Below, piece after piece: positions 22,603-35,335 of a DNA stretch of 36,012 nt. How positions within the stretch are numbered: position 1 is the first letter of the stretch; each line of letters begins with the position of its first letter. Origin of the DNA: Prasinococcaceae sp. CCMP 1430 (Eukaryota > Plantae > Prasinodermophyta). The DNA is taken from NCBI GenBank assembly GCA_013416795.1, contig RQSC01000678.1, positions 1 to 36,012 on the forward strand, written 5' to 3'. The position numbers were made by a program, and so were the translations under genes. The notes under the pieces are model-generated. The model did not search any database and was not told the DNA's origin. It saw nothing but the letters and a program-made list of their open reading frames with translations.

Positions 22603-24693
22603 CTATTGAGGCGCGACCGAGCCAGGCGGCAACGCCGGCGATGGCGCCATTGTGGAGTTCGGCAGACCAATCGGGGACATTCCAATGCCAGCGTGAGCCA
22701 CATCGGAAAATTGCGCCAGCGGATTTTGCGCCTGCAGCGCTCGCTGCTGCGGCTGCAAGACCGCTTGCCCGTGCATCATCTGCGACAGCAAGAGCTGTGT
22801 TGACGCCTGCGGCCCTGCTGTCTTGCTCGAGCGTGCCAGGTTTGGTACCTGGTTGTGTGCGGCAAGGTGTGCCACCGGCGCGCGCATCCCCAGCGCCTGT
22901 GCCGCCACCGCATTCTGTCCGAAAGTTTCACTCGTCGGCGGGGGACCCCCCGCCCCGCTGTTGGCCAGCATCGCTTGCAGCGCCTGGTGCTGCATTGATT
23001 CGCTCTGCTGCTGGCCTGCTTCGTAAGCCAGCTGCAAACACACGGACAACAGTGCGCTGTCCGCGTTGGGCATGACCTTGCATGAATTCATCAGGTGCAC
23101 CAGCGAGGAGAGCGGCACAAATGCATTGGTGTCGTTGGTCGCCGGCGGTAGAAACTGTGAGCCCGGGGGGAGCGCAGCATGCACACCCTCAAGCGCCGCG
23201 TTCTCGTATGAGCGATTGTCCTTCAAACTCTTTCGCCCCCGCGTGCCCCCCTCCAGGCTCCCCGACGGGCGCCGCCTGCCAGAGCCCCTCCTCGACTTGC
23301 CGCCCGCACCCGCATCGCCGCCGTGGGCGCCGCCTACGTCGGCACCGCTCGGCGCCGCGGCAGGCCCCGCGCCGCCCGCCTGAGCACCTCTGGCGTCACC
23401 GCCAAACTGCTCGCCTCCTGCCTTCATGGCGGTGATGTAGTCGCGAAGGACGGTGGACCTAGGCACGGTCCCGGTGTGCCGCCTGGCACGGTTGTCCTTG
23501 CGGCGCGTCGTCGAGTTCCAATGATTCTTGATCGCGTTGTCCGTACGCCCCGGCAGGCGCTTCGCGATCTCGGCCCACTTGTTGCCCAGCTCGCGATGAG
23601 CGTCCACGAGCGTCTGCTCCTCCTCCTCCGTCCACTCGCCGCGTTTGATGTCCGGCTTGAGGTGGTTGTGCCAGCGCTCGCGGCACTGCTTGCCCATTCG
23701 CCCAGGCAGGTGCATCGCGATGGTGCTCCACTGCTGCGGCGTGAATCTGTGCGTGCCGGAGGTGGGGTGGGGTGTTCGGGGAGGGGTGTCAGCTCACACC
23801 TACACATGCACGGCGCGTTCGCCCGCTCTGATTTTCGCGCGGATCATCCGCCTCCGCCCCTCCGCCCCCACCCCCCCCGAGCGCGTGCGCAGGCCAGCGT
23901 CCCGTCCGGGACGCGCGCGCGCCCCTCCGGAGCGCCATCGGCCCCATCCCCATCCGCGTCCGGTCCGCGCCCCACCGACCGCGCGCGCCGGCGTTACTTG
24001 GGCCGCGCGCAATCACGCACACGCAAACCGCCGGCGGATGCGCACGCCGTTTCTTTCCCCTCCCACCGCACTCAAAGTGATGAGGGGTCAAATTCGCCGC
24101 GCGCGCGGTTCGCCGCCCGGCGCCGTTTTTTTCGTTACGCGGCCCGCCCCTCGCCCCGGCCGCGTTCCCCCTCGCCGGCCGAGAGAAAAAAACATTCTTT
24201 TTCCTTTTCCCGTTGAGAATTCCGCCCGAATTCGGCCGCAAAAAAAGAACTTTAAAAAAAAACAAAAAAAAAAAAAAAANNNNNNNNNNNNNNNNNNNNN
24301 NNNNNNNNNNNNNNNNNNNNNNNNNNNNNNNNNNNNNNNNNNNNNNNNNNNNNNNNNNNNNNNNNNNNNNNNNNNNNNNNNNNNNNNNNNNNNNNNNNNN
24401 NNNNNNNNNNNNNNNNNNNNNNNNNNNNNNNNNNNNNNNNNNNNNNNNNNNNNNNNGCGCCGCCCGGCCTGCGGCCGGGGCGGGCGGCAAAACAAAACGC
24501 GCGCAGGCGAGCGCTGGCGGCAGCAGGGTCGCTCGGCGGGCGCTCTGCCGCCGCGAGGCGCGACGCACTTGGCGACGAGCTCGCGGAGCTGAATGTCCTC
24601 CTCTTCCGTCCACTGCCCCTTCCGCTCCTCCACGGGGGCCATGTTCGAGCACGCGTAGTTGTCCTCGCTGGCCCTCTCGTCGTCCGGTGCCAT
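22603..24693 (-). CDS. R2R3 MYB transcription factor with c-Myb-type R2 ([12 protein letters not shown]); exons 24693-24569 and 23746-22603
   Basis: The GT(24568)..AG(23747) intron joins [18 protein letters not shown] to [43 protein letters not shown]...[13 protein letters not shown] in frame (1269 nt). The intron contains an N-gap. The start could be 24642, 24693 or a further upstream exon. Confidence 0.9.
24280..24456. other. Assembly gap (other gaps: 29447-29507, 31357-31871, 34741-35149)
   Basis: Runs of N flanked by homopolymers or microsatellites; true gap sizes are unknown. Confidence 1.
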
Positions 24694-29239: not shown

Positions 29240-29507
29240 CTTCGAGTGCACGGCGAGTGCGCGCGTCCGGAGCGGCAGTCGACTCGGCAGGCGCGGCCGT
29301 CGCAGGGGGCGAACGCCACCGCGCGCACAGTGGGGCGCGCCGCGCTCTGCGCGCACCTCCGCCGCGCCGCGCTCGCGCGCGCAAAAATATGCTGTCACAT
29401 CGGTGGCGGCAGGCGCCCACAAACGCTACATCAAAACGCATGCAGCNNNNNNNNNNNNNNNNNNNNNNNNNNNNNNNNNNNNNNNNNNNNNNNNNNNNNN
29501 NNNNNNN

Positions 29508-29615: not shown

Positions 29616-29771
29616 ATATGATCGCGTGCAGGTGCGTGTGGAGGCGCGCGTGTGAGTGCGAGTGATGGTCTGCGCGTCAGCGTGTGCCTGCATTGGTGCG
29701 TGTGTGTGTGTGTGCGTGTGTGCGCACGCGCGTTTGCCTGCGCGTGCGCGCACGAGTGCGTGCGCCCGTAC

Positions 29772-29952
29772 CGTTGGGCTTGAGCACGACAAAGTACGCG
29801 ACGGCGGCGGCGAGCAGCGCCAGCTGCGTGGGATCGGCGACGAGGGCGATCGCGGCGTTGGCGATCGCATCCGCGTCGACGTCGACGCCCGCGGCGTTGG
29901 CGGCGGCGGTGACGCCGCTCGCGGCGAAGGCGGCGGCCAGGGGAGGGGGCAT
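29772..29952 (-). CDS. Probable first exon of a membrane protein (Ala-rich N-terminus + one hydrophobic helix); rest of gene unresolved
   Basis: ATG 29952: MPPPLAAAFAASGVTAAANAAGVDVDADAIANAAIALVADPTQLALLAAAVAYFVVLKPN, with strongly C/G-ending codons. It ends at a GTACGG donor (29771), followed by a microsatellite and a gap. Confidence 0.5.
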
Positions 29953-30194
29953 CGCGCCTGGCGGAAGTGCAGGGCCGCGCCCAGGGGGGCAGGATCGATG
30001 CCCGCCCCCTTTCGTCCCCCGACGGTGCGGAGAGGAGGGGGGGGGGATTGGGTTGTCCCCCGGGCGCGCCGGCGGCGCGCTGCCGTGTGGCAGAGGAGGG
30101 GGGCTGGGCGAAGGCGTGCGTGCTGGCCGCAGGCGCACCGGCGCGCGGCAATGTCCGTGGCAGCGCGATCCGCCGCTGAGCACCGATGTGACAG

Positions 30195-30224
30195 TTGTAA
30201 ACAGCTTTTTTGGACGGAGAGCAA
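30195..30224 (+). promoter_or_regulatory. AT-rich TATA-like box at about -30 (TTGTAAAC) and CAA just before +1 of the tRNA
   Basis: Positions resemble the upstream TATA-like and CAA elements known from plant tRNA genes. The region is unusually AT-rich for this window. Confidence 0.4.
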
Positions 30225-30359
30225 GCGGAGTTAGCTCAGTAGGTAGAGCGCAGGTCTCATACATCAAAACCGATCGTGCCATCCTGGAGGCGAAGCTATG
30301 CTCGCGCGCACTCCGAGTGCGTTGGATACAGGTCGGCGGTTCGATCCCGTCATTCCGCA
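30225..30359 (+). tRNA. Elongator tRNA-Met(CAT) with two introns: 30262-30280 (37/38) and 30287-30329 (43/44)
   Basis: Acceptor stem GCGGAGT/ATTCCGC+A73, D-arm GCTC-AGTAGGTA-GAGC, anticodon arm CAGGT-CTCATA|A-TCCTG with the U31:U39 apposition typical of eukaryotic elongator Met, variable region AGGTC, T-arm GGCGG-TTCGATC-CCGTC. Removing both inserts gives a 73-nt cloverleaf. Confidence 0.88.
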
Positions 30360-30362
30360 TAA

Positions 30363-30368
30363 TTTTTT
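30363..30368 (+). terminator. RNA polymerase III terminator (T6) of the tRNA-Met gene
   Basis: TTTTTT begins four nt after discriminator A73. Confidence 0.8.
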
Positions 30369-31324
30369 GCGCGGATGCGCGCGCGCCCTTTTTTTCCGCG
30401 CGCGCGCATTTTTTTTAATATCGTCAACCACTGCACTCCGTCATAGCACGGAGGAGACTTTGTCGTATTCGTTCGTAGGCCTACTCACCAATGGCACCCT
30501 CAACGGCGGCGCGGCTGATCCATGCGCCATCCGCGCCATCTACCACGTCGGCGGCGACCCCCCCTCCCTTCGCACCCTTCGCAAAACTGCGACAGCGAAC
30601 GCCCTGACCGCGAACCAACGTGACGCGTTCATACTAGTGTCCAAGGTAAAGAATTGTGCTTGGGACAATCGAGCTCATGGGTCGAGGCCTACATTATGCG
30701 CCGGTGGGCTGCGGAGGTGCTGGGCGTAGTCGACGACCATGCGGCGCGCGATGATCGATCATCCACGCCATCTATCTCGTCGGCGGCGACACTCCCCTTC
30801 CGGCTCGCGCGCGGAAACGAGGATCCTCGGATGCTGGCCTACGTACTCGCTGGCGTCCGTTTACGAGGCCGTCAATGCCAAGCTTCGGTTTGTCCGAGAC
30901 AACGCGATTGATCCAAGCAAATATCTCCCTCCCGAAGGTCACGGATATGCCGCATCCCGGACCGCGAGGAGCCTTCGCGACCCGCGCCGCGCGTGCATTC
31001 CAAACAACGTACACAATAAACCCTACTCATATGACCCTATTCGGTGCAATTCCGACCGCCACCACCCCTAACTCCGGAACGGTTCCCAGTACAAAACGAA
31101 AGCACCCCCTCATCAAATAGACCTACCCAAGCTTCTTCGAGGCGCATGCATGGTGCTATGCGGCACAGTCCGACACACACACACAAGGAAACGGATCGCG
31201 CGTCGTCGTCCCGGTGCGCCACACGGCGCCTCCCCTGCTGCGTGCCCCCCCCCCCTTCCCCTTCCCCTAGGTTGCGGCGCCTCGCAGCCCCCCCCCCCCC
31301 TTCCGCCCCCCCGCCGCGACGACG

Positions 31325-32387
31325 ATGGCTGCGGCGGCCACGGCGGCGGCCGCGCGNNNNNNNNNNNNNNNNNNNNNNNNNNNNNNNNNNNNNNNNNNNN
31401 NNNNNNNNNNNNNNNNNNNNNNNNNNNNNNNNNNNNNNNNNNNNNNNNNNNNNNNNNNNNNNNNNNNNNNNNNNNNNNNNNNNNNNNNNNNNNNNNNNNN
31501 NNNNNNNNNNNNNNNNNNNNNNNNNNNNNNNNNNNNNNNNNNNNNNNNNNNNNNNNNNNNNNNNNNNNNNNNNNNNNNNNNNNNNNNNNNNNNNNNNNNN
31601 NNNNNNNNNNNNNNNNNNNNNNNNNNNNNNNNNNNNNNNNNNNNNNNNNNNNNNNNNNNNNNNNNNNNNNNNNNNNNNNNNNNNNNNNNNNNNNNNNNNN
31701 NNNNNNNNNNNNNNNNNNNNNNNNNNNNNNNNNNNNNNNNNNNNNNNNNNNNNNNNNNNNNNNNNNNNNNNNNNNNNNNNNNNNNNNNNNNNNNNNNNNN
31801 NNNNNNNNNNNNNNNNNNNNNNNNNNNNNNNNNNNNNNNNNNNNNNNNNNNNNNNNNNNNNNNNNNNNNNNCCCCCCCCCCCCCCCTTCCCCCCCCCCCT
31901 TTTCACGCCAGCACAACGCTTCGCCTCCGCCTCGCGCGCCCGCCCGCCCCAGCGAGCGAGGCCGCCCGGACCGGACTGACCCCGTCGTCGCGCCCACCCC
32001 CCTCGCCCCGCCAACCGCACCGTCCGCACAAAAACACACCCACACCCACACGACCGACAACAACAACACCAAAAAAAAAAAAAAAACTTAGCGCGTTCGG
32101 CGAGTCGCTGCGCGCCCTGGTGCGCGTGGGCGAGCTCGAGCGCGAGCTCGAGGGCGCCACCGAGGACATGGAGCTCATGGCCAGGCTCCTCGACGAGCTC
32201 GCCGACGCGCAGCGCGTGTCGGAGGCGGCGGCGTTCTCGTCGCTGGAGGAGATGGAGGCGCGCGTGCAGCGCATGATGCCCGAGCTGGGCTTCGCGCCCG
32301 CGGACGCCGACCGCCGCGTGCGCGAGTTCTCCGGCGGCTGGCAGATGCGCATGTCGCTCGGCAAGATCCTGCTGCAGGACCCCGACC

Positions 32388-32426
<39 letters not shown>

Positions 32427-33646
32427 ACGCGCTGGAGTGGCTGGAGGGCTACCTCAAGGAGCAGAAGATGCCCATGGTCATCGTGTCGCACGACCGCGAG
32501 TTCCTCGACCAGCTGTGCACCAAGGTCGTCGAGACCGAGCGCGGCGTGGCCACGACCTTCGGCGGCAACTACACGCGCTACGTCGAGCAGAAGGCGCAGC
32601 AGGTCGCCGAGCAGCGCCTGGCCTTCGACCGCCAGCAGAAGGCCATCGCCGAGAAGCGCTCGCTCATCCAGCGCCTGCAGGGCGGCGCGCAGGCGGGGCG
32701 CGCCACGCAGGCGCAGAAGGAGCTCGACCGCATGCTCAACGAGGACCGCGTCGAGAAGCCCTTCGAGGCCCGCAAAATCCCCTTCTTCTTCCCGGAGAAG
32801 GACTACCGCGGCACGGAGCTGCGCTCGGGCGTCGAGGTGGTCACCGCGCAGGGCGTGGCGCACGCCTACGGCAGCCGCACGCTCTTCCAGGACGTCGACC
32901 TGCGCGTCGAGCGCGGCGACCGCGTGGCGCTGGTGGGCCCCAACGGCGCGGGCAAGAGCACGCTGCTCAAGATGATGACCGGCGAGCTCGCCCCCGACGA
33001 GGGCGAGGTGCGCATGGGGCCGCACGGCGTGCTGCTCAACTACTTCCAGCAGAACCAGGCGGAGGCGCTCGACGGCGAGAAGACGGCGCTGCGCACCATC
33101 GAGGAGGTCACCATGGACTGGAAGACCGGCGACATCAAGGGGCTGCTGGGGCGCTTCCGCTTCAAGGGCGAGGACGTCACCAAGCAGGTCAAGTGGCTGT
33201 CGGGCGGCGAGAAGGCGCGCCTGGCGATGGCCAAGTTCATGGTGACGCCCGCCACGCTCATCGTGCTGGACGAGCCCACCAACCACCTGGACATCGCCAC
33301 CAAGGAGCTCATGGAGGAGGCGCTGCGCGCCTTCCCCTTCACGGTGGTCATGGCGTCGCACGACCGCTACTTCCTCAAGCGCGTGGCCACGCGCATCGTC
33401 GAGGTGAAGGACCGCGGGCTGGTGGACTACGAGGGCGGCTACGACGACTACGTGGGCGGCAACGAGGAGCGCGCCGCCAAGGAGGCCAGGCGCGACGCGA
33501 CCGTCAGGGAGAAGGGCGCCAAGGTCAAGGCCAAGAGCAAGATGACCAAGGCGGAGAAGGCGGCGCTCAAGAAGGAGAAGGCCAAGGCCTTCGCCGGCGG
33601 CGGCAAGAAGAAGGGCGGCAGCAAGAACGCCAAGCGCTGGAACTGA
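31325..33646 (+). CDS. ABC-F family soluble translation ATPase, plastid type (Arabidopsis ABCF2/ABCF5-like, EttA/Uup-related); N-terminal part lost in gap 31357-31871
   Basis: [32 protein letters not shown], second Walker A GPNGAGKST, LSGGEKARLAMAK...DEPTNHLD and a basic tail ending KNAKRWN. The large exon probably starts at 32092 after TTAG. Candidate ATG at 31325. Confidence 0.92.
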
Positions 33647-34740: not shown

Positions 34741-35335
34741 NNNNNNNNNNNNNNNNNNNNNNNNNNNNNNNNNNNNNNNNNNNNNNNNNNNNNNNNNNNN
34801 NNNNNNNNNNNNNNNNNNNNNNNNNNNNNNNNNNNNNNNNNNNNNNNNNNNNNNNNNNNNNNNNNNNNNNNNNNNNNNNNNNNNNNNNNNNNNNNNNNNN
34901 NNNNNNNNNNNNNNNNNNNNNNNNNNNNNNNNNNNNNNNNNNNNNNNNNNNNNNNNNNNNNNNNNNNNNNNNNNNNNNNNNNNNNNNNNNNNNNNNNNNN
35001 NNNNNNNNNNNNNNNNNNNNNNNNNNNNNNNNNNNNNNNNNNNNNNNNNNNNNNNNNNNNNNNNNNNNNNNNNNNNNNNNNNNNNNNNNNNNNNNNNNNN
35101 NNNNNNNNNNNNNNNNNNNNNNNNNNNNNNNNNNNNNNNNNNNNNNNNNGCTCGCTCGCCGCGCGGCGGCGCGGCGCGCGCGGCGCGTACGAAGAGGGAC
35201 AGTAGTGTTACACGCCCCGCGGCCTCGGTCGCGACGACGCAGGGGCTCACTCGCCTCGGGCCGCCAGAGGCCTCGCCGAACCGCCGCGTCGTCGCATCGT
35301 CGCGCGCCCGCCCGCCGCGTCGCCGCCCGGCGCGG

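Follow-up and report, generated by a model that had tools for sequence, protein, structure and literature searches.

A probable two-intron nuclear elongator tRNA-Met gene of a green-lineage alga with a predicted bulge-helix-bulge intron at position 43/44

Among described systems, the red alga Cyanidioschyzon merolae has the nuclear tRNA genes that come closest to the gene analyzed here (Soma et al. 2013, PMC3728597). As in the present case, these are Pol III-type genes that combine an intron at the canonical 37/38 site with introns at non-canonical sites; their junctions also fold into a bulge-helix-bulge (BHB) motif, one of them in the variable arm, and standard scanners miss those genes too (PMC3728597). 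RT-PCR of splicing intermediates in C. merolae demonstrated that the ectopic introns are removed first and the 37/38 intron last, and in most of its pre-tRNAs the introns form their BHB independently (PMC3728597). Splicing of relaxed BHB forms that lack an outer helix occurs both in C. merolae and among some archaea (PMC3728597, PMC3978253). The BHB introns of archaea (Thermoproteales and others) share with the present gene a 4-bp helix and two 3-nt bulges, with a cut after the second base, and at non-canonical sites the archaeal central helix likewise borrows exon bases and the cloverleaf must locally unfold. In the green lineage, plant and green-algal elongator tRNA-Met, tRNA-Met(e), genes carry, like the present gene, a 37/38 intron with an anticodon-intron pair. 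The prasinophytes Ostreococcus and Micromonas, which are green picoalgae with BHB-type processing of disrupted genes, have permuted tRNA genes, and the permuted tRNA-Ser(TGA) of O. lucimarinus, with a 27/28 intron listed as "no H", provides one precedent for a non-canonical position; it is the sole green-algal exception listed in a review that otherwise credits green algae with "almost no" ectopic introns (PMC3978253). The tRNA genes of photosynthetic organisms are the subject of a 2026 review in which Prasinoderma does not appear and non-canonical introns, assigned to red algae and to the cryptophyte nucleomorph, serve as a mark of the red lineage (PMC13578239). For example, Chondrus crispus and the Guillardia theta nucleomorph have predicted BHB-like introns outside 37/38, as found here, but both are red-lineage (PMC13578239). 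Nuclear tRNA introns are not a topic in the main text of the paper on the P. coloniale genome (PMC7455551), and our full-text literature search returned no report of ectopic-site BHB introns in a green alga. An ectopic BHB intron in a multi-intron nuclear tRNA gene is of a known kind, found here in a lineage for which the literature searched reports near absence.

The gene lies in a stretch of 36,012 nucleotides, referred to below as the window, and is composed of the following parts.

30225..30261, + strand: exon 1, tRNA positions 1-37, with the acceptor stem's 5' strand, the D-arm containing the A box, the 5' strand of the anticodon stem, CAT and A37 (from the Rfam alignment and the sequence)
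30262..30280, + strand: intron 1, eukaryote type, 19 nt inserted at 37/38, the canonical site
30281..30286, + strand: exon 2, the 6-nt micro-exon ATCCTG, tRNA positions 38-43 (from the Rfam alignment and the sequence)
30287..30329, + strand: intron 2, BHB type, 43 nt inserted at 43/44, a non-canonical site where anticodon stem and variable loop meet
30330..30359, + strand: exon 3, tRNA positions 44-73, with the variable loop AGGTC, the T-arm with the B box GGTTCGATCCC, the 3' strand of the acceptor stem and the discriminator A

The original prediction had described a cloverleaf with a 19-nt insert at 37/38 and a 43-nt insert at 43/44, and every one of its coordinates proved exact. Rfam RF00005 matches 30225-30359 (+) with both inserts in place at 41.3 bits, against a gathering score of 29, and its alignment places two large insertions, one in the anticodon loop and the other just past the anticodon stem. 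Removal of both inserts yields a 73-nt product that ARAGORN calls tRNA-Met(cat), and restores, as had been anticipated, the junction ATCCTG-AGGTC, which is that of most intronless eukaryotic tRNA-Met genes fetched in this work. Direct reading of the spliced 73-mer gives U8, A14, G15:C48, G18G19, A21, G26/A44, U33, T54-T55-C56, A58 and C61, and this full set of universal and tertiary tRNA bases is obtained only with both inserts excised at the sites listed above. With A1:U72, three G:C pairs at 29-31/39-41 and A54/A60 taken as the marks of an initiator, the presence of G1:C72, T31/T39 and T54 in the gene identifies it as an elongator, not an initiator, tRNA-Met(CAU). Its anticodon arm is identical to that of many eukaryotic elongator genes among the metagenome loci fetched, and the arm, CAGGT-CTCATAA-TCCTG, is plant-like, as is the variable loop AGGTC. 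The exons are collinear, i.e. the gene is not circularly permuted, its 3' half not being encoded upstream of its 5' half. Together, these features support the view that the locus, with its canonical intron at 37/38 and BHB-type intron at 43/44, is a real-looking nuclear gene for elongator tRNA-Met.

Standard scanners had been expected to miss or mis-call such a gene, and this is how ARAGORN behaved, making zero calls in default mode and, with the intron option, proposing a tRNA-Ala(cgc) with a single 44-nt intron. That parse is one form of a reading in which the 43 nt are retained, the other being a tRNA-like RNA with a giant variable arm, and hairpins are indeed predicted for the insert where a class II tRNA has its extra arm. 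The tRNA-Ala/long-arm parse was nevertheless dropped over its mismatched anticodon stem and irregular arm; retention of the insert also ignores the perfect Met anticodon arm and leaves the BHB register described below unexplained. A variable region of 48 nt would be well beyond those of known class II tRNAs, and we regard retention of the insert as extremely unlikely.

Excision of the 43 nt, on the other hand, is predicted from the motif at the borders of intron 2. BHB motifs were scored strictly, the 4 bases 5' of the 5' bulge pairing with the 4 bases 5' of the 3' bulge, with cuts after the second base of each 3-nt bulge, on opposite strands. The elements of the motif and the sequences next to it are as follows, a slash marking the predicted cut.

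30281..30284, + strand: BHB central helix, 5' strand, ATCC (tRNA 38-41), whose use here excludes the anticodon stem
30324..30327, + strand: BHB central helix, 3' strand, GGAT (intron 2 positions -6 to -3), giving 4/4 Watson-Crick pairs
30285..30287, + strand: 5' bulge, T42 G43 / G, predicted cut after 30286, the third base being G or C between alleles
30328..30330, + strand: 3' bulge, A C / A44, predicted cut after 30329
30278..30280, + strand: candidate outer helix, 5' strand, GCC, the last three bases of intron 1
30331..30333, + strand: candidate outer helix, 3' strand, G45 G46 T47 (GGT)
30306..30322, + strand: hairpin within intron 2, GCGCACT-CCG-AGTGCGT, 7 bp, in all predicted folds

The exact BHB geometry that had been proposed for 43/44 was thus recovered in all its parts, namely the ATCC/GGAT helix, the bulges TG/G and AC/A, the inner A:T and G.T pairs and the 7-bp hairpin. 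At the cuts 30286/30287 and 30329/30330, the outer flanking helix has 3 pairs (one G.T) and the inner one 2 (A:T and G.T), where the hBHBh' form is defined by at least 2 bp in each flanking helix and the outer pairs depend on intron 1 (P=0.13) and are missing from the best constrained fold. Of the ~10,000 candidate site pairs in the gene, 3 combine a 4-bp central helix with two flanking helices of at least 2 pairs each, and the motif at 43/44 is the best of them. Chance expectations were derived from 200,000 shuffles of both introns, or from random draws at window composition. The central helix arises in the exact register in 0.3-1.2% of cases (P=0.003-0.012) and a whole motif as good as that observed with a frequency of about 0.5-1.2 x 10^-4, as compared to 13-14% for the outer helix alone.

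Several features set this arrangement apart from the systems described above. C. merolae is a red alga, whereas the present gene belongs to the green lineage and its splicing is predicted only; the gene also differs from those of C. merolae in the 43/44 site, in the 6-nt micro-exon between the introns and in having a BHB that competes with the anticodon stem. Although C. merolae introns form their BHB independently in most pre-tRNAs, here three bases of the neighboring intron can join the motif. Unlike archaea, the host is a eukaryote with a presumed heterotetrameric Sen/TSEN enzyme. With respect to O. lucimarinus, whose gene is permuted and whose intron is classed as "no H", the present gene is collinear and has a perfect central helix.

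Intron 1, in contrast to intron 2, is of the ordinary type. At position 37/38, its G(-3), G30278, can pair with C32; this anticodon-intron pair, characteristic of eukaryotes and leaving the 3' splice site bulged out, had been claimed for the first insert, and it is present in the gene as well as in a natural relative described below. The intron has only 2/4 pairs in place of the 4-bp central helix, so it is not a BHB. The motif ATCGTG in its 3' part (window 30272-30286) resembles the micro-exon ATCCTG that comes after it, and, when the central helix of intron 2 is forced, the complementarity of this 3' part to the anticodon stem's 5' strand comes to 7 pairs with one bulge, a pairing that is weaker in the relative. 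The likeness could be the remnant of a local duplication, or simply reflect the usual pairing between intron and anticodon arm.

To place the gene among other tRNA-Met(e) genes, JGI metagenome contigs were scanned with the 20-mer GGTAGAGCGCAGGTCTCATA from the end of exon 1, which gave 42 loci and no orthologue of the gene among them. Most of these loci are uninterrupted eukaryotic tRNA-Met(e) genes reading ...CAGGTCTCATA-ATCCTG-AGGTC..., i.e. the predicted spliced junction. Single 37/38 introns interrupt the tRNA-Met(e) genes of L006, L010, L011, L029 and L039; the intron is 64 nt long in L006 and of similar length in L010 (contigs of 51-55% GC), and ~142 nt long in L011 (1321-1570) and L029 (1543-1790), whose contigs have 67-68% GC; these look like other green picoalgae in which the canonical intron is long. 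None of the intron-bearing metagenome tRNA-Met(e) genes has a second intron. Because several loci have a 37/38 intron, the canonical intron is common in tRNA-Met(e). In L010, the 200 nt upstream of the tRNA-Met gene (1012-1211) hold further tRNA-like 3' halves with GGTTCGATCC-type T arms, which suggests a tRNA gene cluster.

A natural relative carrying both inserts was identified in marine metagenomes by searching a library of protein representatives with a spurious ORF (29684-30418, +) that reads through the tRNA gene. The predicted "protein" retrieved (P0241, the one member of its 90% cluster) has 83% identity to the spurious ORF over the part covering the tRNA gene and is encoded on 6 independently assembled ENA contigs from 6 samples, of TARA Oceans and others (L046-L051). 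Other routes were less productive: synteny via the downstream ABC-F gene led to two TARA contigs (97.5% and 86% DNA identity, the latter L001) that both end short of the tRNA gene, repeat proteins dominated the matches to the upstream WD40 gene, the antisense ORF that overlaps the tRNA gene gave no matches, and exact look-ups of the PsbP-like ORF returned nothing new. Each of the 6 contigs is 96.4% identical to window 30034-30420 and has an Rfam tRNA match of 41.7 bits with both insertions, one gene sequence being common to 6/6. Since both inserts occur in 6 independent contigs, they are not an assembly artefact.

Comparison with the window reveals 73/73 identical exon bases on the 6 contigs. 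Intron 1 of the relative has 16 nt instead of 19, CCG being absent and one C replaced by T, with CATCAAAA at its 5' end and GTGCC at its 3' end kept. Intron 2 is identical at 42/43 positions, and the sole change, G>C at its first base, falls on the third, unpaired position of the 5' bulge. In the 5' flank there are 4 differences, none of which lies in 30190-30214 or in the CAA before +1. The confinement of changes to introns and flanks is as expected under selection on the exons, which is suggestive, although with three events it is not significant. The G>C change also bears on the position of the second splice, since the mature tRNA is unchanged by it only under 43/44, whereas splicing at 44/45 would make position 44 strain-variable. 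The 44/45 reading, which would give a mature G44, was rejected, being contradicted by the BHB register, by the consensus A44 and by this alteration of the mature tRNA in the relative.

The similarity of the 6 contigs to the window has abrupt limits: all begin within a few bases of window position 30034, and the similarity ends past 30420. The next 600-850 nt consist of CAGTTTTGCCGCA-like repeats without counterpart in the window, in L001 or in L002, and in L046 this non-matching downstream part includes a ~95-nt direct duplication. The loss of similarity past 30420 could stem from structural variation, or from a repeat with its boundary a short way downstream of the tRNA gene.

The acceptor, D and T arms were fixed in predicting how the precursor folds. 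Its minimum-energy structure, at -46.1 kcal/mol, has the normal anticodon stem, which competes with the central BHB helix for bases 39-41 and so excludes it. Within the whole precursor, this central helix has an ensemble probability of ~1.5% and forcing it costs 2.7 kcal/mol; in the isolated segment 30281-30330, its probability is about 0.9. The enzyme or co-transcriptional folding would therefore have to capture a minor conformer. For non-canonical BHB introns, local unfolding of the cloverleaf is the rule, and the small predicted BHB population is therefore no argument against splicing.

The dominance of the anticodon-stem conformer in the predicted ensemble would also be in line with a dead or dying gene copy, in which an insertion in the variable region resembles a BHB by coincidence and another gene supplies tRNA-Met(e). 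The region is indeed repeat-rich and has N runs on either side, but all exon bases and all universal tRNA bases are intact in the gene, and the exons are identical in the relative despite its diverged introns and flanks, with the T-run terminator kept. A coincidental pairing would further have to account for a BHB register with P of about 1e-4 to 1e-2 and for predicted cuts that restore the consensus A44. We therefore consider a dying copy very unlikely. As judged from the sequence, the locus is instead probably a functional nuclear elongator tRNA-Met(CAU) gene, with a twice-spliced precursor, of a GC-rich marine green-lineage alga.

A functional gene of this kind would be processed as follows. 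Pol III would transcribe the gene, and bases 38-41 (AUCC) of the precursor would pair with GGAU near the 3' end of intron 2 instead of taking part in the anticodon stem, a pairing by which each splice site would come to lie in a 3-nt bulge, with four base pairs between the two. The tRNA splicing endonuclease would cut past the second base of each bulge and tRNA ligase would join G43 to A44, the anticodon stem forming afterwards. Intron 1 would be removed in the ordinary way, by endonuclease guided by the mature domain and the C32:G(-3) pair. It is plausible that the splicing endonuclease of this alga has archaeal-like BHB recognition.

The original prediction had gone further, in claiming that the GCC of intron 1 is needed for the BHB and that the order of removal is obligatory, with 43/44 before 37/38. 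According to this model, GCC pairs with G45-G46-U47 as the outer helix, and intron 2 is cut only with intron 1 present, which fixes the order. The three GCC/GGT pairs do exist, but three pairs including a G.U are found in 13-14% of shuffles, and the G(-3) of intron 1 is already accounted for by its pair with C32. Once intron 1 is gone, no outer helix can be drawn and A37 faces G45; BHB motifs without a flanking helix are, however, processed in C. merolae and archaea (PMC3728597, PMC3978253). From an energetic point of view, the outer helix contributes about -1.8 kcal/mol to the bare motif, and the minimum-energy fold of the local 56-mer of the relative is the full BHB including the outer helix. 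In the precursor with the central helix forced, on the other hand, intron 1 uses its 3' part to pair with the anticodon stem's 5' strand and not with G45-U47, the best such fold having -43.4 kcal/mol versus -41.7 kcal/mol with the GCC/GGU outer helix, so that imposing the outer helix too costs 4.4 kcal/mol. The cost of the central helix rises from 2.7 kcal/mol with intron 1 to 5.2 kcal/mol without it, in apparent support of the model; yet among 400 shuffled versions of intron 1 the mean cost is 2.3 +/- 2.0 kcal/mol, and 62% match the help given by the native sequence, which means that this help is generic and not sequence-specific. For a tuning of intron 1 to favor the BHB, the same shuffle test gave a negative result. 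The GCC is unchanged in the relative while intron 1 differs elsewhere, but there is no covariation: the check proposed for ATCC/GGAT and GCC/GGT turned out to be uninformative either way, because all four strands are unchanged in a relative that is too close to provide covariation evidence for or against any helix. The GCC/GGT helix is therefore a set of pairs that exist, at a level expected by chance in 13-14% of cases, outside the preferred fold, and the obligatory order that rested on it is left unsupported.

The removal of ectopic introns first is known in C. merolae (PMC3728597) and as such agrees with the fixed-order model, which we nonetheless find unlikely. The broader proposition that the introns are interdependent, the 3' end of intron 1 supplying the outer helix or otherwise freeing 38-41 from the anticodon stem, is likewise rather unlikely. 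If true, it would mean that the ectopic intron is excised only from an intron-1-bearing precursor, as an intron-encoded checkpoint on processing order, and this would be the reverse of archaeal nested introns, in which, according to work cited in PMC3728597, the last BHB forms only after the removal of another intron. In the present gene, no prior processing of the transcript is needed for the BHB of intron 2 to be drawn, and the dependency put forward is the opposite one. By analogy with C. merolae, removal of the ectopic intron first appears to be the more likely order, its enforcement by intron 1 being unsupported.

A BHB intron at 43/44 that is kept in wild relatives would, with splicing as predicted, extend a red-algal trait to Viridiplantae. 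If the genome is that of Prasinoderma, the trait reaches a phylum branching before the split between Chlorophyta and Streptophyta. The finding is relevant to the question of whether the eukaryotic splicing endonuclease had its broad BHB recognition ancestrally in Archaeplastida or gained it repeatedly. It also implies that standard scanners leave this genome's tRNA repertoire under-annotated. The micro-exon of 6 nt, together with the competition between BHB and anticodon stem, makes the gene a convenient substrate for splice-order tests.

The genomic setting agrees with a GC-rich marine green-lineage source. Where unbroken by N runs, the window has 61-70% GC; its ABC-F gene has Viridiplantae ABCF5 closest among named proteins, and its nearest relatives are in marine metagenomes, among them TARA Oceans samples. 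The tRNA gene is on a 1.85-kb island bounded by N runs at 29447-29507 and 31357-31871, and no copy of either intron, which would be a sign of a mobile intron, was found elsewhere in the window. Further N runs are present at 24280-24456 and 34741-35149, and CA microsatellites and poly-C tracts adjoin the tRNA gene. The ORF at 31325-33646 (773 aa), used as the ABC-F gene query, spans 515 N, and its N-terminal third is not real.

The gene has a Pol III type 2 layout, with the A box TAGCTCAGTAGG and the B box GGTTCGATCCC as predicted promoter elements and a T6 run downstream. Its flanks contain two further features of interest.

30190..30224, + strand: 5' flank, with an AT-rich stretch at 30190-30214 (TGTAAACAGCTTTTTTGG) and CAA directly before +1
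30363..30368, + strand: T6 run, starting 3 nt past the discriminator base, candidate Pol III terminator

The AT-rich stretch and the CAA may serve as upstream promoter elements for Pol III, the TATA-like role and that of the CAA in the 5' flank being those that we presume from plant tRNA genes. The T6 run is likely the Pol III terminator. Directly 3' of it, 30369-30416 comprises two GC-rich palindromes, each followed by a T run, T7 (30389-30395) and T8 (30409-30416), and these palindrome/T-run units are probably back-up Pol III terminators. The palindromes and T runs are kept in the relative, save that a GC-rich palindrome and the final T run are each one base shorter there. The palindromes also have sub-threshold Rfam matches to bacterial terminator-like sRNAs, namely STnc320 (21.6 bits) and anti-hemB (16.7 bits).
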